Below are positions 6,440 through 49,500 of a stretch of DNA of 64,000 nt, piece by piece. Position numbers and translations under genes: made by a program. A model generated the notes under the pieces. The model ran no database searches. It was given only the letters and a program-made list of their open reading frames with translations, and had not been told where the DNA came from. The DNA is from Trichoplax adhaerens. Taxonomy: Eukaryota > Animalia > Placozoa. The DNA is taken from assembly GCF_000150275.1 (NCBI RefSeq), contig NW_002060961.1, positions 248,001-312,000 on the forward strand. The letters run 5' to 3'. Numbering within the stretch: position 1 is the stretch's first letter; each line of letters begins with the position of its first letter.

Positions 6440-6597
6440 CAGGGTGTACCATAACATTTTGTCACTTTCGGGCCATATTTTTCTTTCAAAATACATGTAC
6501 AGTAAAGCTATAATAGAATGATATATTAATCAGTATTTGCTTATTAAAATCACTGGTTGATGCTTTTCAAAGTGACAAAATACTTTGATACACACTG
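6440..6597. mobile_element. Tc1/mariner-type MITE (158 bp, non-autonomous)
   Basis: 29-bp terminal inverted repeats match at 24/29: left cagggtgtaccataacattttgtcacttt (6440-6468) vs reverse complement of 6569-6597, cagtgtgtatcaaagtattttgtcacttt. Termini are CAG...CTG. Right flank is TA; left flank is TG (probably mutated TA). AT-rich non-coding interior. Confidence 0.75.
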
Positions 6598-7188
6598 TAC
6601 AGTACATGGCACAATATGGCGCCAGGGTAAGATGATTTTCCAATGGCATCATACACTACAGTACAGTACTTATTACGCAGGTTTTCAACCGTGACTTTTG
6701 AGGTATTTGGACCGGTCTAGGACAATTCGACGTCGACAATTTACCGCTGTACAATGGAGTAGTATAGGATGACATCAATGTAGATTGGATAGGACGACGG
6801 TGAATTCCAACACTTTGCAGCGTTCAATCCTATACACCGTAAAATGAATCGAATGCAATAAACTATCTGCTTTGATATTACGAGGGTGGATTGAATATTT
6901 TACGCCGTCAAATTCATTGAATACGGTAAATTATCCGGTTTCGGTATTGGACACTGTCACGACTTTTGGGCTTTGGAGGTGCAATTTTATCGGTAGGGGT
7001 CCCTGTTGACACGGTTGTAAAATATGGCGCACAACTTTTCAGCCCTTCCAATGCTGTCGAAATCACTGAGGCCAAAAAGGTTTTATCCTTTTTACCTCAC
7101 CGAGTCGCCTTTTTCACCTAGAGGGCACAGATCGAATGGCTACTGCGTTCACCGTACAGCGCGTGGCTGGTTCACTCCACTGAATACT

Positions 7189-33707: not shown

Positions 33708-36700
33708 TTACGACTGCACTCCATGACGCTGCTTCAACTGCCTTAACTTAATTTCAAGCTTCGTACGCTCCTTCATAATCTACAGGAATGTGATCAAAAT
33801 ACTGTAAATAAATAATATTACTACTATTCGAATAACACCCAACAATTTTTTTGGCGACAAATGTAATTTTAATGCACATACCGTTTTCAGTTGCATTTCT
33901 AAATCAGCATTCATACGACTTAAGAGCAAATTATTTTCCTTTAACGCCTGCATATCATCTCCGTGTTCAGTCGAATTTCTCCTGTATTGTGAAGTAAGTC
34001 AGATAATACTTCATAAAGCCTGATAAATGAAACGAATTATTGCCTTTACAACTTACAGGTTCACTTCAGCAGCTGTTTGTTTCTGTTTAGGTACCGGTGG
34101 AACAGCCGATTCCTTTTTGGTATTGTCTACCTCACTCACATTGACTTTTCCATCAACCTAGCGATATCAGTAAATGTTATACATACAAGTGTATACGATA
34201 CACAATTACCATAATCATTATAAAATATTATTCCAGTATCAGAAGATTGAAGGATTTACCATGTCATTACTACTTTCGCTTTTCTCTTCATCCACCAATT
34301 TTTCCAATTTGACCTCTACGATAAAAATAGAGATATAAGCGATAACTTTCAATATATATTATATCAAGCTTTGAAGCAACCCACTTGAATATATAATTTT
34401 AAACACGAAATATTATAGCAAAATTAACGTAGTAAACTTACTGATAGAATCAACTGAGGTAGAAGTAGGTAATTTAGAAGTAGGTATTCCAGTATTCGTT
34501 CCTACCAGATCAAGCTAAAAGATACACGTTTTGCAATTACTCTTAAAGTTTAAAAACTTAACTCATCCTCTATTTAACATAAGACACGATAACAAGTAAA
34601 TGACATTCTCTGTATTCCCTCTATTACCAAGTGTCACATCCACTATGAAAAATTAGTTCAATTTACGAACTGCAGTCTATAGAGGTACAGCGACACTTCC
34701 AGCTCTATACAACACTAACCTGATCTAAATTGAGTGACATAGACCGCCTATGACCTTTTTCAGTTGTAACAGTATTGATAGCAACCGCAATTTTTTCAGC
34801 TCTACTTTGCTTGTCAATGTTGTCGAAATTGGCAAAATTAGGCACTTCAGAAGTGATTTGATTTGCAGTAGAAACTTCTGATCGCTTGTCGATCTTTTCC
34901 TCAGTAATGCGGTGTTCTTCAGCTACAACTTCAGATACATTCGCCTATAACGATCACGATAAAATAACGTCTTATTTACAATAGAAGTAAAGCAAATTAA
35001 ATTAAAAACTATCAATTTTAGCAACTTATTTAGTAACATAAGGTTTGTGTACTAATCAATAGCTTAGTATTCTTAGAATTTATGACATTCATCGGTAATG
35101 AATAAATTTAATTTATTGTAGAAGTCACATACGACATTGTTTGTAGTAGAAGCTTCCGCTAGTTTCTTATTAAGATTAGAAATTGGTAAAACGTTAAGGG
35201 ATGAAGTACGTAGATTCGGAGAAATTCTCGGCCGTGGAGTTGCGGACTTCCCTCCCGTTACTGTAATCATTCAAAGATAAGTCATCTGGATATGCGCAAG
35301 CATTGAATAAAATGCGATCTTTAACGTACTAAGTAATCCTTCATACCTTTACTAGCAGACGCAGAAAGAATTTGTGATTTACTTGGAGGAGGAGCCAACT
35401 TAATTGCATCAGTTTTCTTTGATACCTTTCAATAAAAAGAAGATAACAATACGGTAAAAATGTACCTTTAACTTGAACAAAGACTGCAATACGCAACAAT
35501 ATGCAGCATTGAATTGCAACAGTGGCCCGAAAATCGGACTACTGTCAAGTCAGCGCATAGTGCAAGTCACTAATGTGCACTTATGCAGTATAGCAAAATG
35601 TATTCCACAAATAGAAACGTTATACTTACTTTTACAGATTCTGGAGTAGTGGCCTGAATGCTCTGCGGCTGCCCTTCTGATGGGGCTGGTAAATTTTGCT
35701 GCATAGACTGTGGTTGAGAAAGTGGCTGTGGCAATACTGACGGCTGTGGTTGCATTTGTGGTTCATTCGCCATGGCTGTAAATGCCGTAGGATCAGATAA
35801 ATTTCTAAATCTACCATCAGTTCTTGTAACCTGAGGCTGCTTAAGAGGTCCAGAAATGGCATCCTAACGTAAAATTTAACGGATAATGCTTTCATATGTG
35901 ATATTCATGAAAATGCCGATTAGCAAGGAATACATTTACCCTTATAATTAATTCAAAGGGCAAAATAATAATTATAATCAGTAGGACCTGTTACTACAAA
36001 GCATTCAGTATGCTATTCAGTAGTCTAACACGTTTGTATGCATCATATGTATTGAAATTTTGAGTTTACTTTCATAACAATTTTTTTTAATTGTTAAGGA
36101 ATACCTCAGTATGCATTTGATCTACTGGTCGCTTGGCAGGTGAAGCCGATGACGAATCAATCCAATCACTCCCACTTTTAATATTAGGTGGTATCATTGC
36201 AGTAGCTGATGACCAACTAGGTGCCGGCATAGGCTGAGACTGTTCCGAAGCATTTTTAAACGGACTACCGAAAGCTTGAGATGTCTTGACAGGAGTAGTA
36301 GTTACTTGAGTATTTTTAATCGTAGCAATCGTAGTAGGTGTATTAGGCTGATTAGAAACTCGTGTAGTCTTTGCCGGTGTAGTGGAAACAGCAGCAGGGA
36401 CTACAGATGATGGAGGTGGTGGACTATCAGATTGGATTGGTAACTCTAAAGCAAATGGATCAGCTAATAAAAGAATAAAGAATACATTCAGTGAATTCTT
36501 AAAACTTTAACGTTACTATTAGAAGGCAATTTGTCGAAGAATATTGCTACCTTCTCTTTCTAAAGCAGTCGGAAGTGTGTCCGGAACTTTAAGCCCATGC
36601 TTCCTGCATATCACCAAATGCATAGCAATACAAAATTCCGCTAAATTTAAAGCATTATCCATATTCACATCAGCCAACTTCCAAATTTTGCTCAATTCTT

Positions 36701-39700
36701 GTTTATCAAGTTTGGATTTTAAGAAATGATTTTTAGCAATTGCTCCAGAAACCAAACCCGTTTCGTCATCTTTTACTAACGTCAAAAATTGTTTCTCGTA
36801 AATATCACGTTGTTGCGATTTTATCTCCCATCTTGAATCATCGCGGTCTGCTTCTATCAATTTCGAGTTTTGGTTTGCGCTAGATGTTCGAGAGGTAGAT
36901 TGAGAAATAGCGCCTTGTTGTTGCGTAACTGGTTGAGAGGATTCATTTTGAGACTGTTGAGTTTGATTCCCATTAGAAGAAGCAGTCAGTGGAAAATTTG
37001 CCCAACCTGGGTTCGCTTGTGAGGCTTGCGTAGAGTCAGATGATGCAAAATTAGCCCAATTACCTCCACTGTGTCCACTATTAGTAAAGATTTGACTATC
37101 AGTCATGGAACGAGAGGATTTAACCTCAATAGGAGACTGTGGAGGTGACATTGAAGGAGGCGAAGTCGTTTGTCCAGATCTTGATGAAAACGAAATATCG
37201 GTGCGCACAGAGGATGAAATAACTTGATCTGAACGTTTACCAGATGTTGGTGGTGGAGGAATTAATGGTGCGGGTCGAGCTTTATTAACAGGCTCACTAT
37301 CCGTTTTATCTTGGGCTACTTAAATTCAACACCAAAAGTATTTTTAGAATCTTTACAAAGTAAATAAATGGGTTGATCATCCCGCAGTCTATCAGTAGCT
37401 AATCAATGTAAACTATTCATTATAACGTCTTTAAGCTACCACAACGGTACTCAATAACAACTTCTACAATCCAGCGATAGTCTAAATACAAACATTAATA
37501 CATTGAAGTTCTTTTACCTTCGCTTAATACCGTTTGAACAATGCCTGGATCAATTGCAGCCAAAGGCGGAGCATTATCATCTGCAACAGTGGTCATACTA
37601 TTAGCACTTAAATCTATTATTTGCAATCGCTAAAAAAAGAAGAGATTGACGAATTGTGCAGGGTATACGTATATCCTTCAGTACTGGCGCTCGATATTAA
37701 AATCACTAATTTACGAGTATTACATAAGACATAAAAGTGTACAATATATTAACAACGATGAGAACAGATTGTGATTATCTACCGTAAACACTATTTGAGA
37801 GCAATATAACATTACTCATATCAATTGCAATTATTGATCAAGATTAAGTTAATCAAAAAATATGCGCTATAATAAAAGTACTTACTGGAATCGTAGCTTT
37901 CCAAGTCTAGATCATTTTGTGCCATAGCAATCAAACGTAAAACGATACTGAATTGACTTTGATTGAAAAAATGTAGTCTGTCAAAACCGCTTATTTGCAA
38001 TATCTAAATTTGGATAGGCAACAAAATATCATTTTACTTAGTATAAATAATTGAAAAGCATTGAAGTGTATCGTAGCTAGCAAGTCTTAACGCTGCCTTA
38101 TCATGTGGGTAAGCGATTAACTGGTCAAAATTGAATAGTAACTAATTTTTATACCCCATTGATCTATTCTATACCCTCGATGGGAATGCAAGCGCGTTGC
38201 TACTAGAGCGGGTGGCAAGTAATTAATGTACCTTTCAAATGGAACTAAAGTTCTTTCAAATAGTTTTGAAGATTTGCTAAAATAGTATCATGTAGCGTTT
38301 ATTGGCTTCCCTCCATTCCTACCTACACAGACGCTACTGGATTAACCTTTAAACTACTATTGGATATTTAGTACTTGTAATGCGCAATGCTCAAGTACCA
38401 AGCGATTTAGCCAAGATTTCAACAGCGCCTACGTAAAGTATTTCAGTTAAGTGTTGGAATAAGTCAATTTTATCATTACAGTCATCTCAGTTCTGCTGAC
38501 GGGATTACCCAAATTTGTACTTGTTGTCCATGCCTGTATAGTACATGAATAGCATGTAACAGGAGATCATTTAACTTGGTGAGCTATGGATAATTATAAT
38601 GGACTTTTTATCGTCCATTCTAAATTGCGTTATAGGATATCCATAAGTAGATAATTATTTCTTTTTAGACTTTGTAATTACTGTAATACATATCCGCAAC
38701 AGTATTATAGTAATGGATTCTATTGTTTACTTTTGGTTAAAATAAAATTCTAGTAGTAATTTTTTTTCTCATCCTTCATGAGTAGCAGGTCATGCTGTAG
38801 AAAGGCTCGATGGAAAACTTGGGTAGAGACAGCAGTACGGATTTCAGGAGGTATTTATCTAATACAGTACAGCAAGATCACAACATGATTATCCTGCTTT
38901 TCGAAATCCATGGTAATAAAACACCTGGTATTATTATTATTATGTCTGTTTAATATGGTGCTAGACTGGTCATGAACAATCACAAGTATGATACGTTTTA
39001 TTTTGTCCTTTTTTCTCTAAATAGCTCTACTGCACTGTATAACGCTTTACGATCTCCTGAATTTGACATGGTCAATCATCAGTATGGTGTTTTGGGTAGT
39101 TATGTCAATCCACGACTTGGATTCGATAAAGAATGTTTGTCTACGTATACTTGTAGCCAGCATCGTTTTAGTTGGAGTTGTTTCATGCCAACTCTATAAA
39201 TGGAATTAAAAGCTGCTAAAGTGGCATTTCTTGTAGTGTAGCAGTATAATCGAATTAGTGATAATTTCCAAATCTCAATTCAATTACAGATTACATCCTT
39301 TCCAAGTAGTACAGTAAAGTTGCAATTTCAATTTAGCGCACTCGAGATAGCCCATTTTGCAAGTACTGTAGAGGCACTTTCTATCGCTTTATGATTTTGC
39401 ATTGATTAGGCATACACATCCATGAGTGTACAATTAGTGTTGGGTTATGGCAACTGCAGGAATTGAATCGAAAACTACTCAACTGACACGTACTGTCTGT
39501 CTATATGCGTATAATTGAATTGATAATAATTTTTAAATCACGGTATGGTGTGCTCATTGTAGTGGCTAAAATTGAATTACAAGCTACCCAACTACCTCAC
39601 TTCTAAGTAGTACAGTCGAGTTTTACTTCTCCTACGCGTATTTATTTATTTATTCATTTTGCAACATGCTACTATGTACAATGAGGATAAAAAGTGTTTC

Positions 39701-41491
39701 TCTTCAAGCTACTAAAGAGTATGGTAAGGGTTGAAAATGATGGAGAAGTATAATCATGTTGGTAGACATGTTGATCCGACACAACTTTTGACCTGAAATG
39801 ACCAACAATCCTGCCTCGCCCTGTTGACAGAATTGCAAGTATACTGTATTTACTTTTCAATTCATTATTGCACTTTGTGCACAAGGTTACGGGTAGGAAT
39901 ACTGGCATTTCACAGTTGAAAAGTGGCGGTCGATAGTGACTGTTGAAAATAAAAGAGCCAACTATCTGATAGTTGTTAGGCAAAGTTGGATGAAATTTGA
40001 CATACTGTAACGCCATCTAGCAATGAACAATAAAGCGAAAATAGCATCATCGTTGCACTTGACTCATTTTACAACATGCTACTATGTACAATGGGGATCA
40101 AAAGTGCTACTCTTCAAGCTACTGAAGAGTGTGGTAAGGGTTGAAAATGATGGATACGAACAATCATGTAAGTAGACATGTTGATCCGACACAACTTTTG
40201 ACCTGAAATGACAAACAATCCTGCCTCCCCCTGTCGACGGAATTTCAAGTACACTGTATTTACTTTTCAATTAATTATTGCACATGGTGCACAAGGCTAC
40301 GGGTAGCATTGAAATACTGGCATTTCACAGTTGAAAAGTGGCGGTCGATAGCGATTGTTGAAAATAAAAGCGCCAACTATCTGACTTGCAAGGCAAAGTT
40401 GGTTGAAATTTGACATGCTGTAATGCCATCTAGCAATGTACAATAAAGTGAAAATAGCATCATCGTTGCACTTTACTCATTTTACAACATGTAAGTAGAC
40501 TTGTTGATCCGACACAACTTTTGACCTGAAATGACCAACAATCCTGCCTCGCCCTGTCGACAGAATTGCAAGTATACTGTATTTATTTTTCAATAAATTA
40601 TTGCAGTTCGAGCACAAGGCTACGGGTAGGAATACTGGCATTTCACAGTTGAAAAGTGGCGGTCGATAGCGACTGTTGAAAATAAAAAAGCCAACTATCT
40701 GACTTGTAAGGCAAAGTTGGTTGAAAAATTTGACATACTGAAATGCTATCTAGCAATGTACAATAAAGTGAAAATAGCATGATGGCAAAGCAAATGGCAC
40801 TGCATGGATTCAAGTGTAAATCTGACCACTGTTTGATATGGCGGTATACTCGTATGTAGAAGCGATACAATTGGGTAAGCAAAGTCATGACATGCTATGA
40901 CGATGTGTACAGTAGAAGGAGAATGGAGTAGAGTTTGCAAAGTGAGAAAGTCAATCCTACGCGTCATGAGTAAACAGTTACTGCCTACGAGTCTCCATGT
41001 TGGTTGCAATTTAGGATTAAGATGGGTCTAGACAATCTAGTGTACCTATGTAAAAAATGTCCAAATAATTGAAAGGCTGTTTACGCGTAGACAAATTGAT
41101 GGTGCTTGCAGCAAGTGAAAGACATTGCCTACTGCTGTGGAGTAGTGCAGCGTCAGTACGATCAAGCTACAATTTCCATTTACATAAATGATGCATGCCA
41201 ATTTCAAGGCGTCCATGAAGGATTGAAACAAGTTGACGGTGATGATGGTAATTGGGTTGAACGGCTCATTGCCATCGTACTTGAGCATGATTGTTGGTGA
41301 TTTTATGGTTGTCATCAAGTAGACTACTAAAGCAATCATCATCTTACCTTGACGGCCATATTATCATCCAGTCCAGCTGCTTTGATAAAACTTTTGACTC
41401 GTTCACTTTGAATTTGGCTAAGATTATCAATGTCCAGCCGTTCAAAAATTTCACCGTAACTTTGCGATTCAATCAAAGAGAGAGGCATCAT
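33708..41491 (-). CDS. REPS1: RalBP1-associated Eps15-homology domain protein (REPS1/2-like)
   Basis: Exon 1 (41348-41491, MMPLSLIESQSYGEIFERLDID...) and exon 2 (about 37887-38004, FNQSQFSIVLRLIAMAQ) form the N-terminal EH-like domain. Central EH domain WEIKSQQRDIYEKQF...LSKIWKLADVNMDNALNLAEFCIAMHL. Pro-rich and WANF motifs. C-terminal coiled coil LKENNLLLSRMNADLEMQLK-IMKERTKLEIKLRQLK, stop at 33708-33710. Confidence 0.88.
39650..40785. repeat. About 410-bp tandem repeat (roughly 2.7 copies) inside REPS intron 1
   Basis: Units start at about 39653, 40063 and 40477 (tcatttt.caacatg). High visual identity. The third unit has an internal deletion. Confidence 0.9.
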
Positions 41492-42137
41492 TTTGGCGTC
41501 GGCAATTTTCACCCAACAACAAACACTTTCAAAACAGTCTAGGCTAACGATTGCAGATGGTATGGTAGTCGATGGTAGAAAGAGCGTAAGATAGGTGGAT
41601 CAAATTGTTCTTGTCCAGTGTTTGATCTAGTAATCCTCCTGTCTACTCCGGTATAGCCAATCAAGTCTGCAATAGTATGGCAAAAACGCTCGACAATGGA
41701 CGCCAACACTCTTCTTCCAGCCCCAACTTACACGATGGACAGGCCACTTTTAACGATTTCCACTGTCATGGACTAATATACTACAACGGAACGATTGTCA
41801 TTAACAGTATAGCATCATCCATTGGCTAAACTAGGTCCACTAACTTGATTGAAGATGTCTACAGTAAATTAACAAGGCCAAATCCAATTGCAAATGGTCA
41901 ATTTCCACGTTCAAGGGAGGATGCTCTTTCCAGCTTGGATGGCAATTTTCCTACCATTAGCTTGATCTTGCCACTCGATTGCTTTGCGCTAGTCAATGCA
42001 ACCAATGGTGCGGTGGTGTTTGCTACTGTCGTGGTTGCATAGTGCAGTCTCTTTTTTTCCAGTACCATGTACTGTAGCAAGGAGAGCCAGCCCGGTACAA
42101 CCGGTAGACTACAGTGTACAGTACTTCCAAACAGGAA

Positions 42138-42145
42138 TGACGTCA
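42138..42145. promoter_or_regulatory. Perfect CRE palindrome TGACGTCA in the REPS/MPC2 divergent promoter region
   Basis: Exact 8-bp bZIP site about 650 bp upstream of the REPS ATG. Function untested. Confidence 0.4.
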
Positions 42146-42539
42146 CTTGGACTGTGTACTTGACAGTGTACAGTGTACAGTGCTGCTGTACGTACTGTAC
42201 TGGACTGGACTGTGGCATCTTGGGACTCTACTGTACAGTACAGTACTTTTAACTGCCAGCACGACAGACTAGACTAGGAAATGGAAACACTTTTTCACCT
42301 CTTCAAGCCCGGGTTAAGAAATCACTTTAGTTTGCAACATACTATCGATGGCAAAGTACTTTAGCATGATAGCGTTGAAAAGAGTGCTGTGCTCGTCATA
42401 GAAACCCAAGGCAAAATCATCCTCGCCAATTTTTTCTCTCCACGGCGCGTGTGCTGTACAGTGTACAGTACAGAACCACCGTACTGTACACTGTACACTC
42501 CTGACGTAACAGTGACACTTCATCCTACACTACTGTAGT

Positions 42540-43535
42540 TTGTAGTTCAGTAGGGAGGGGAATTTTCTCTTGAGGGTTCTACAGTATGTGTACACTGTAC
42601 AGTATACTATACACGTAGAACATACTGACACGGTAGACTAAGTGCCAAGCAAGGTCAATTTTCTCTTCAACTGTAGTTCAGTAGGGAGGGGAATTTTCTC
42701 TTGAGGGTTCTATGTGCATAGTACACTATACACATACTATTGCTGACACTGGTCTGACAATTTTCTCTTCACCAGTCCATGGTACAGTACAATGTACTCT
42801 ACTGTACTGTACAGTAGAGCATACTGACACTGTAGACTAAGTGCCAAGTACTGTAAGGTCAATTTTCTCTTTAGCAGTCCATGGTACAGTACAATGTATT
42901 GTACCCAGAGAACATACCGACACTGTATGTACTGTAGACTGAGTGCCAAACAAGGTCAATTTTCTCTTCAGCAGTCCATGATACAGTAGTACAGTACTGT
43001 ACACTATACTGTACTACATGTACTGTACACATAGAACATACAGTACTGACACTGTAGACTAAGTGCCAAGCAAGGTCAACTTTCTCTTCAGTACTGTACT
43101 GTATGTTCTCTGTGTACAGTACAATGTACTGTAGATAACATACTGACACTGTACTGTAGACTAAGTGCCAAGCAAGGTCAATTTTCTCTTCAGCAGTTCT
43201 CTGTGTACAGTACATTGTACTGTACACAGAGAACATACTGACACTGTAGACGAAGTGCCAAGCAAGGTCAATTTTCTCTTCAGCAGTCCATGGTACAGTA
43301 CATTGTACTGTACACAGACAACATACTGACACTGTAGACGAAGTGCCAAGCAAGGTCAATTTTCTCTTCAGCAGTCCATGGTACAGTACAATGTACTGTA
43401 CACAGACAACATACTGACACTGTAGACGAAGTGCCAAGCAAGGTCAATTTTCTCTTCAGCAGTCCATGGTACGGTACAATGTACTGTACACAGACAACAT
43501 ACTGACACTGTAGACAAAGTGCCTAGCAAGGTCTT
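42540..43535. repeat. 88-bp minisatellite (about 9-10 units) between divergent REPS and MPC2
   Basis: Consensus aagtgccaagcaaggtcaattttctcttcagcagtccatggtacagtacaatgtactgtacacagacaacatactgacactgtagacg. Clean units at 43253, 43341 and 43429; units become increasingly disrupted leftwards. Confidence 0.95.
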
Positions 43536-43857
43536 GCTTCCTGTTCCACTCAACTGGGAGAAGATCAACTTGGAAAAAAAAATTGGCTACTCATTAGCCA
43601 TCAATCCACTCAAAACTTACTGCTGCTGCTGCTGCCCAAAATTGTAATACTCAAACCAACACTTTAAATCAACTAATATTATCTTACAGCGATAGCATCA
43701 TTTTAAACAATCCTAATCGACGTATGTGTATTCTACTGTTGGAGTGTAGCATCTTGCTTTGGCTTCGAGTTGAAGCTGTAGAAACTGCTCAAGCTGCCAT
43801 TTTTATTCATTGATTCAAAATACAGACCATTTCAATCTATGTAAAGTCATTGTATCA

Positions 43858-44197
43858 TGCAAGAAACAGCTGTAAAGTCCATTGCATGTTAGTTTAACCA
43901 ACCATTGGGATTGAAAACGCGCTGATTGTATAATGTACATGCTAGTAGTTAGTCGATTGTCATCATGGATCGCCTATTAGTGACAATACTTTCTCTTACA
44001 GTGTACGTGTATTATTCAATCCGTTTGCAAGAAACAGCTGTAAAGTCCATTGCATGTTAGCTTAACCAACCATTGGGATTGAAAACGCGCTGATTGTATA
44101 ATGTACATGCTAGTAGCTAATTGATTGTCATCGTGGATCGCCTATTAGTGACAATACTTTCTCATACAGTGTACGTGTATTATTCAATCCGTTTGCA
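43858..44197. repeat. 168-bp near-perfect tandem duplication upstream of the MPC2 ATG
   Basis: tgcaagaaacagctgtaaagtcc... begins at 43858 and at 44026, with few substitutions. Confidence 0.92.
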
Positions 44198-44351: not shown

Positions 44352-46211
44352 ATGAGTGCTTTATATCGTTTAATTATCACTCGCTTAGATCCTTTGGTCC
44401 CCAGTCGTTACCAAACTTTTTGGAATCACCCTGCAGGTAAACTCCAAAATAATACACAACATGACTGACTAGAAATGACGTTTAGACAACTTCGATAACT
44501 CATATCATGAATTTCAGTCCAAATCAAGTTAGTATTTGCTTGATGCCTTCCCCAACTGCCATAAGCTTCGTACAAACTGCTAGTTATCAAATGCTTTCTT
44601 TTGCTACACGCACCCTTTTATATGGTAGTATCATGCATCATCTCGTTGGCAGACTCTGATTATTATCCACTCGCTTATCCAATAACTTGGTCATTTATTT
44701 TACAAAGTATCCAAGTTAGCGTACAGTGGATCGCTGATTCAAGATTTGACTTAGTATCAGATTCCATATTGTATCCCCAACTTTATCGTAACTACGCGTA
44801 GATAGAGTTTGAAAGTATCGCCAGTCTATCTACAGTATGCGTATCAATCATAATCGTTCCATTTTCAGTGCATTTCCTTTCCTAAATACAGTTAATAACA
44901 AGCTATGCTCCATCTGAATAAATCAATTCTTGCAGCAGTGATGCTGTTGCTGGATTGTTTATGCGAGACAGCAACCAGTAGATTGATTGAAAGTTGCTAG
45001 CGTAGACATTGGTATGTGGATTCATTCTAAACTTACAAAACGTAAATCATTGACTTGCAAAGCAATAACCACTTCATTGAATATCTGCCTTTACGAGTAT
45101 GTTATGAAATGTGCACTTACGAGTCTATGTAACTATCAAGATTTCAATTAACCTAAAACTCTTTGTTTCAACAGGACCGAAAACCGTTCATTTCTGGGCA
45201 CCAACTGTCAAATGGGTATTGCATTTAATTAATACGCAGTAATAAGGAATAACCTTGCATGCCGAATAGATGATCTAAGCTACTTGTTAAACTGTGCTGT
45301 AATCATAAAGTACTTATATTAGATTATTATGTTGCCATTTCAAACCTTATTAACCTTTGATGAAAAAAAACGTGGCCTGTGCCATATATGGATTGTAGTA
45401 TAGCGTCTGCTACTGCAAGTTTCTCTTCGCTCGCGCCAATGATGAACATATTTTTCCCAAAATTATAGTTGATTTTGCTTGCACGCCACTATTCAATGGT
45501 ATGCAAGTTCGAGAATGCATTGACTTGTACACAAATAGACTGCGGGCAATTACAACACCTGCAACGTCTTTCCAATGATAAAATGAAATTGGATAGGAAT
45601 AGCCTGTACTTTAATGCCGAATAGATGCTGCACCTACATTACAAATAGCTACATACTGTAACCTACCTTCCTACCATGACTTCATTGATATTCCATTAAG
45701 AAAGGAAATATCCAATTTTTTCCTTCTGTAATAGGCCTTAGTGATTGCCGGCTTAGCCGATATGGCAAGACCTCCAGAGAAGCTTAGTGTTCGACAAAGC
45801 GGAGCTCTTGCTGCAACCGGGTGCATTTGGGCTCGTTATTGCTTGGTGATCATACCGAAAAATTATTACTTATTCAGTGTCAATATGTTTCTTGGCACCA
45901 CTGGCTTCATTCAATTGACTCGCATTTATTTGTAAGTATCAAGATATCCATGTCTTGCCATGACATCCGCTGTCTAATTGATGTTGTGTAATAAAATACT
46001 TTCACAAATGGTTGTCCACACTTACAGCATTACTTTTCATAAATTGACTAATTTCTTTAGTCCTACAGTCTAATTTTGTATGTGTAATTATCCTACGTTG
46101 TACAGTTTATACTTATGTCTCCGCTATTCTTCTAATTGTAGACACCAAAAATCGCTCAACGCGGAACAAATAGCAACTAATACGCCTGCAATTGAAGATG
46201 CGAAAAATTAA
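44352..46211 (+). CDS. MPC2: Mitochondrial pyruvate carrier 2
   Basis: Exons 44352-44436, 45175-45215, 45735-45931 and 46142-46211. Translation includes WNHPAGPKTVHFWAPTVKWALVIAGLADMARPPEKLSVRQSGALAATGCIWARYCLVIIPKNYYLFSVN. Confidence 0.96.
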
Positions 46212-48699: not shown

Positions 48700-49500
48700 A
48701 TTATCCTCTACCGTCCATTTTTCCCAGTGCTATTTACTCGTCTCGACATCCAGATGTCATATACTCGTATAAATTAAATTATTATCCTCTACCGCATATA
48801 CTCGTATAAATTATCCTCTACCGTCGATTTCTCCCAGTACTGTTATATTTACTCGTCTCGACATCCAGATGGCATATACTCGTATAAATTAAATTATTAT
48901 CCTCTACCGCATATACTCGTATAAATTATCCTCTACCGTCGATTTCTCCCAGTACTGTTATATTTACTCGTCTCGACATCCAGATGGCATATACTCGTAT
49001 AAATTAAATTATTATCCTCTACCGTCGACTTCTCCCAGTGCGATTTACTCGTCTAGACATCGAGATAGCATATACTCGTATAAATTATCCTCTACCGTCG
49101 ATTTCTCCCAGTGCTGTTATATTTACTCGTCTAGACATCCAGATGGCATAAATTATCCTCTATCGTCGATTTCTCCCAGTACTGTTATATTTACTCGTCT
49201 AGACATCCAGATGTCATATACTGATATAAATTATCCTCTACCATCGACTTCTCCCAGTACTATTTAGTCGTCTCGACATCGAGATGTCATACTCGTATAA
49301 ATTATCCCAGTATTATCCTCTAGACCTCTACCATCGATTTCTCGCAGTGCTGTTTACTCGTCCGGACATCGCGATGTCATCCATGTACTCGTATCAATTA
49401 TCCCAGTAGCATCCTCTACCGTCGATTTCTCACAGTGCTGTTTACTCGCCTGGACATCGAGGTGTCATACTTGTATAAATTATCCCAGTATTATCCTCGA
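48700..49500. repeat. 70-85-bp minisatellite (about 9 units) with an exact 115-bp higher-order duplication
   Basis: Unit attatcctctaccgtcgatttctcccagt(a/g)ct...tttactcgtct(c/a)gacatc(ca/ga)gatg(g/t)catatactcgtataaa. 48781-48895 is repeated at 48896-49010. Confidence 0.93.

Follow-up and report, generated by a model that had tools for sequence, protein, structure and literature searches.

CAGTA and CTGTA gains at TA sites in a Trichoplax adhaerens minisatellite, and Tc1/mariner-type excision as their possible source

What process adds the same five letters, CAGTA or CTGTA, to the units of a minisatellite, and why at TA? The question is raised by a tandem array in a window of the Trichoplax adhaerens genome (the whole stretch of DNA that was analysed, 64,000 nucleotides), in which a preliminary description had read five differences between sister units as footprints of Tc1/mariner excision accumulating in a promoter. 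Pentamer gains at TA proved to be real, while their interpretation as excision scars found partial support only.

The minisatellite and its five cases

The array and its surroundings are made up of the following elements (no strand is given for the repeats and cases):

42540-43533: minisatellite (TRF rows and unit-by-unit alignment)
43180-43533: young block, four units of 88-90 bases, 93-100% mutual identity
42759-43179: old block, four units of 97-121 bases each
42540-42758: diverged variant pair
42060-42540: dense pile of TAC[A/T]GTA between the minisatellite and the first coding exon of the EH-domain gene
41342-41599, minus strand: probable first coding exon of an EH-domain (REPS/Eps15-like) gene
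36522-37319, minus strand: exon with the EH domain of the same gene
45741-45935, plus strand: exon of a mitochondrial pyruvate carrier
42580-42586: case 1, TACAGTA; a sister unit has TA only at 42711-42712 (TA-only form 42703-42716)
42849-42855: case 2, TACTGTA in place of a single consensus C
43039-43045: case 3, CAGTA gained at TA to give TACAGTA, forming a palindrome with the following bases
43152-43158: case 4, CTGTA gained in tandem next to an existing CTGTA
42926-42936: case 5, nine bases gained at TA, which parse as TGTA plus CTGTA
43196-43234: perfect 19+1+19 palindrome, in unit 43180-43269

The EH-domain gene is on the minus strand and its probable first exon lies at 41342-41599, so its upstream region extends to the right, towards the minisatellite. 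Just to the right of the array, the minus strand at 43600-43640 carries a CAG run followed by GTAAGT, resembling an exon end with a splice donor; if this donor is real, the minisatellite could sit in an intron or in the 5' region of another minus-strand gene.

We re-split the units, aligned each of them to an 88-base consensus and tabulated the indels, as had been proposed. The main difference among the unit copies is CAGTA or CTGTA gained at TA sites. Whole C[A/T]GTA pentamers at TA make up only about half of the indels, which number roughly 11, and the older units also carry changes of +8, +18 and -4 bases and a complex change of +11. Gains were confirmed in cases 3, 4 and 5, each of which is derived, being found in a single unit against six or seven units without it. 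Case 4 is compatible with slippage. The positions originally given for cases 2 to 5 were exact, and case 1 was one base off (42579-42585 had been claimed). For case 1, with two sister units only, gain and loss are indistinguishable, and a 5-base deletion between TAs would match equally. Case 2 had been explained by a C-to-T change that made a TA, which then gained CTGTA; TACTGTA is indeed there, but the six-unit consensus has no TA at this place and the C-to-T intermediate is present in no unit. Thus case 2 is not a clean TA event, as a substitution plus a 5-base gain are required, and it is the exception among the whole-unit gains at TA, all others of which have TA on both sides.

Two further claims of the preliminary description held in part. 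Cases 1 and 2 were said to have no adjacent template, which is only partly right: case 1 has an identical 8-mer 18 bases further downstream. The rise in scar density towards the promoter cannot be separated from unit age, the right-hand units being young (93-100% alike) and the left-hand ones old.

Changes of another kind are also recorded in the array. In unit 43180-43269, the left arm of the palindrome has been rewritten to match the right arm, which is a signature of template switching. Case 3 lies within a 28-nt inverted repeat of 96% identity, whose partner is 43096-43123, and it forms a mirror image with the odd left part of the next unit. The palindrome rewrite and the mirrored case 3 indicate that template switching is active here and able to copy units in either orientation. 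Part of the variation in this minisatellite is better read as tandem duplication plus palindrome-templated correction. The resemblance to quasi-palindrome correction by template switching is in the imperfect inverted repeat perfected in one unit and in the mirrored changes in two arms; the difference is that such correction explains some changes in the minisatellite only, and not the isolated-TA gains found elsewhere.

More young tandem duplications are located nearby, at 40160-40780, 43858-44197 and 48700-49024 (periods 323, 168 and 115; 91-96% alike); their few indels include no pentamer unit.

Comparison between strains revealed a 22-base indel and no 5-base unit among the 12 indels listed of 20, with 5-11 gap letters per run beyond those listed. 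Strain contigs from elsewhere pile onto 42000-43400, and long contigs reach only to 42581-42662. The 22 extra bases belong to one 'organism B' run and follow position 42191, inside the pile; at 43620 the CTG run is 6 bases shorter in two strain runs. A search for the orthologous locus through the neighbouring protein returned a single 80% match on a 2.3-kb contig, and haplotig C532, with only one flank in common with the main scaffold, yielded no empty site. Among the strain contigs, this match and the one haplotig, no locus was thus seen both filled by an element and empty with a scar.

Gains at TA in independent sequence, and the orientation of the units

The indel spectrum was established independently in 60 aligned pieces (9.6 kb) from de-duplicated copies of a dispersed element, with polarity taken from the consensus of dozens of copies. 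Insertions of three or more bases are mostly whole C[A/T]GTA units at TA, and every 5-base insertion in the 9.6 kb is such a unit; deletions of three or more bases were absent from the 60 pieces. Most indels in 31 tandem arrays of the window and the loci are, in turn, tandem duplications of 2-4 bases; the pentamer at TA is the commonest 5-base event there. The expected excess of CAGTA and CTGTA over other 5-mers is thus present in both sets. Gains of 10, 14 and 15 bases also occur in element copies and tandem arrays.

Slippage would confine the gains to places beside existing copies. At least four independent gains were found at TA without a neighbouring unit: in the element copies at reference positions 68 (loci L060 and L054, counted once), 178 (L048) and 1159 (L011), and once in the 196-base array of L019. 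The flanks of these gains vary (A-TA-G, T-TA-T and A-TA-C) and have only the TA in common. The gain in L011 is located in one terminal repeat, with no mirror in the other arm. Other gains in element copies lengthen an internal TACAGTA. Taken together, we are virtually certain that pentamer gain anchored at TA is a real and dominant mutational process.

The two words are abundant. TACTGTA (n=69) and TACAGTA (n=60) are the two commonest 7-mers of the window, an excess of about fourfold over the approximately 15 of each expected from a second-order model, and they cluster at 5-7, 28-29 and 42-44 kb. Within 5 kb, in three GC-richer upstream stretches, we find 60 of the 129 units, at a density about 10 times that elsewhere. 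Since the TA dinucleotide is commoner in the AT-rich remainder of the window than in these stretches, an insertion preference or selection would be required. Most unit chains in the window (106 of 116) are single units.

Orientation was analysed in the window together with about 160 kb of element-centred loci, a biased sample. The in-phase unit next to a canonical one is the same in 238 instances, has the central A/T flipped in 148, a transition at the centre in 12 and any other central base in none, while every other unit position shows 15-33 mismatches. Flips are therefore about 12 times as frequent as other changes at the centre, and 38% of adjacent in-phase units are flipped. The contrast of 148 flips with 12 transitions rules out slippage combined with point flips as the sole process, and the mixed orientation comes either from the generating process itself or from selection for A or T at the centre. 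Doublets with the same orientation exceed those with opposite orientation (100 vs 52, p = 1e-4), indicating that orientation is not purely random and that a second process, tandem duplication, adds units. An excess of G before and C after single units was considered as evidence against random TA targeting and was rejected, as it reflects at least partly decayed neighbouring units; it is absent from the polarised isolated gains.

The minisatellite is one clear local example of a genome-wide pattern.

A TA-flanked, CAG-ended element family

Excision scars need an element to make them, and the preliminary description had called for a CAG-ended Tc1/mariner family in this lineage. A CAG-ended candidate family was found, and it has one copy in the window:

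6440-6604, plus strand: MITE copy, TA-flanked with CAG...CTG ends; the only copy in the window, 36 kb from the minisatellite

The family has at least 49-59 matches in the genome. In the alignment of copies, both termini show TA and then CAG(T/G), with inverted repeats of about 30 bases; after de-duplication there are 47 ends, of which 39 have TA as their flank and 36 start with CAG. Several different internal deletions of a 1176-base element (G000:C1211:236-1411) account for the short copies. What this longer element retains is a 93-aa frame without a Pfam match, which shares 34% identity with the N-terminal part of an open mariner-like frame on contig C1385. The C1385 frame, for its part, has matches to Mos1 (E 3.7e-7) and SB100X (E 1e-6) in which all three catalytic D are aligned. 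From these similarities, the MITE family may derive, through its 1176-base relative, from a putative mariner-like element. Six scaffolds carry left parts of the 1176-base element that are 99.5-100% alike, suggesting that it moved recently.

In general form, the family resembles Tc1/mariner-derived MITEs: its copies are flanked by TA, measure 150-220 bases, have terminal inverted repeats of about 30 bases that open with CAG, and represent several independent internal deletions of one longer element. It differs from them in two ways: many copies here have one end only, stop at an internal TACAGTA and continue into piles, and the autonomous partner was not found.

The ends of the family often adjoin the units. 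Of the TA-flanked ends, 19 of 39 adjoin C[A/T]GTA against 13% of the TA sites at the same loci (p = 1e-7), that is 3.7 times more often than TA availability predicts. An element end abutting C[A/T]GTA is the intermediate needed for stacking, although the elements may simply favour existing piles as targets.

Seven loci on different scaffolds (L038, L039, L040, L041, L043, L045 and L037) have nothing of the 1176-base element beyond its left 209 bases (e.g. L038:1501-1709), at 97-100% identity, all breaking at the same internal TACAGTA and continuing into unrelated ACAGT piles; in copies L047 and L051 the break falls at a different TA, near position 182. One-ended copying or a gap repair that was interrupted may account for them; a complete small element was considered and rejected, there being no matching right end. 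The copy in the window shows at 6482-6487 a 6-base gain giving TACATGTA at TA, the form expected if two bases per transposon end were kept.

The proposed genome search for Tc1-like transposases with CAG-starting terminal repeats yielded the CAG-ended family, and no transposase gene sharing the MITE terminal repeats was found in the incomplete, 2008-type assembly; nor was a resident element found at the minisatellite. The only long open mariner-like frame, that on C1385, has no ends in common with the MITE family and lies within a larger duplicated stretch. A profile search with Pfam Transposase_1 gave no match, DDE_3 gave one open 361-aa frame without terminal repeats, and DDE_1 gave three open pogo-like frames, all of them unlinked to the MITE family.

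The C1385 frame (L065:1465-2988, G000:C1385:57340-58863) is open over 507 aa. Its first 336 aa are mariner-like, their D-D-D aligning with that of Mos1, and towards the C-terminus it is interrupted by a palindromic insert of 190 bases (L065:2469-2658). A broken copy of 65% identity lies 15 kb away, with a similarity that extends beyond the gene and may therefore reflect a duplicated host region. The three pogo/Tigger-like frames (L002:1042-2691, L003:859-2115 and L004:1396-2673) encode 419-550 aa with no stops and combine DDE_1 with Tc5, CENP-B or Psq DNA-binding domains; L002 is on the scaffold of the window, about 1 Mb away. By eye, their catalytic residues appear altered in two or three, and these genes are possibly domesticated.

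Sources of the gains and their meaning

The footprint expected of Sleeping Beauty-type excision is TACAGTA or TACTGTA (PMC6943129), an exact match to the units described here. Both consist of seven bases, three from the transposon end enclosed by the duplicated TA, and both occur in either orientation; the putative scars would differ in being fixed in a natural genome, very numerous, stacked in arrays and upstream of genes. The added triplet also equals the terminal bases of an element of this lineage, as counted above (36 of 47 ends starting with CAG, 39 of 47 flanked by TA).

The previous analysis leads us to propose, with middling confidence, that the minisatellite records a genome-wide process adding CAGTA or CTGTA at TA, whose likeliest source is Tc1/mariner-type traffic with ends of the form TA-CAG...CTG-TA. 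Mechanistically, an element would insert at TA and duplicate it; excision would then leave three terminal bases on the flanks as 3' overhangs, which would pair with a central A:A or T:T mismatch and be repaired to TACAGTA or TACTGTA. Each scar would offer two TAs, and re-insertion and re-excision could stack units in either orientation, while tandem duplication, slippage and palindrome-templated copying would add same-orientation units and reshape the piles. What the data show directly is that the gains are anchored at TA, that both orientations are mixed, and that a matching element family exists, is young and sits in the piles. Excision of the element, its three-base staggered cut and a preference for upstream regions are inferred. 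Templated copying, slippage and selection are contributors to this process or rivals of it.

The strongest of these rivals is templated repair or template switching, according to which breaks or stalled forks in the palindrome-rich piles would copy a few bases of a nearby unit from either strand, priming and returning on the TA that recurs every five bases. The resulting gains would be 5, 10 or 15 bases long and of both orientations, and the CAG-ended elements would merely land in the piles. The rewritten palindrome arm, the mirror image formed by case 3 and its neighbour, the identical 8-mer 18 bases from case 1 and the gains of 10, 14 and 15 bases all agree with this idea, and for each observed gain a unit can be found no further than about 10-50 bases away. 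Nevertheless, the isolated-TA gains match a donor only in the two-base TA, with varied flanks, the gain in one terminal repeat of L011 is not mirrored in the opposite one, and neither the origin of the first units nor the uniform one-unit tract bounded by TA is explained. The identity of the inserted triplet with the terminal triplet of a resident TA-inserting family would also be a coincidence. We regard templated repair as possible, though distinctly less probable than excision.

TAC[A/T]GTA, or a palindrome centred on GTAC, could alternatively be a putative binding site that is kept or multiplied upstream of genes whatever its origin. The units do cluster in the three GC-richer upstream stretches of the window, and their centre is A or T only, apart from the 12 transitions of the central-base test. 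Genome-wide, the kilobase upstream of genes accounts for 54% of ACAGT repeats (Wang et al. 2010, PMC2871265), and a network trained on Hi-C data chose ACAGT among the chromatin-associated motifs of Trichoplax (bioRxiv 10.1101/2024.11.14.623548). Selection, however, accounts for retention; it leaves unexplained the discrete gain of five bases at TA, an event seen within element copies as well. We know of no placozoan factor that binds TAC[A/T]GTA, which also counts against this explanation. Selection of a promoter word fits either origin and is an addition more than a rival; as the explanation of the gains, it seems unlikely.

Least probable by our estimate is an ordinary (ACAGT)n microsatellite, expanded by slippage and flipped by point mutation at the central base: it agrees with the published dominance of ACAGT among Trichoplax microsatellites (PMC2871265), with case 4 and several other gains that adjoin an identical unit and with the excess of same-orientation doublets, but it is contradicted by the central-base test (148 flips, 12 transitions and no other change, against 15-33 mismatches at other positions), by the single units that form 106 of 116 window chains and by the polarised gains at TA without an adjoining unit.

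Returning to Tc1/mariner-type excision, the dominant simple repeat of Trichoplax has been without an explanation since 2010, when ACAGT was reported as the dominant microsatellite, its origin not being given, in a genome with 0.13% of transposons, apparently inactive (Wang et al. 2010, PMC2871265). The units described here agree with the published repeat in sequence, genome and position upstream of genes. There the repeat was presented as a microsatellite and possible transcription-factor site, and transposons as scarce and inactive; we observe mostly single, TA-anchored units of mixed orientation, and a young TA/CAG-ended family within piles. A Mutator terminal-repeat motif has been described in placozoan promoter hubs, with targeted promoter integration as one possibility (Kim et al. 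2025, PMC12221973). There too, DNA-transposon sequence is concentrated in promoters; the superfamily and the motif are different, and the element ends stay in place there, whereas only scars would remain here. In the literature, we found no paper linking the Trichoplax ACAGT repeat with Sleeping Beauty footprints. New in this work are the central-base test, the description of an element family that fits the units and includes young copies, and the evidence that palindromes templated some of the changes in the array.

If the piles are made of scars, promoters can be reshaped by cut-and-paste transposons of which no copy stays behind, a genome poor in transposons need not be one in which they are little active, and a class of 'microsatellites' may need to be read again. 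A wider reading, which we put forward as speculative and rather doubtful, is that of hit-and-run transposition: a small, still-mobile Tc1/mariner-type family, targeted to open regions upstream of genes, would have left some 10^5 scars that form the placozoan 'ACAGT microsatellite' and now serve as a promoter or chromatin word. Were this the case, a nearly transposon-free genome would hold its transposon history as scars and not as copies.
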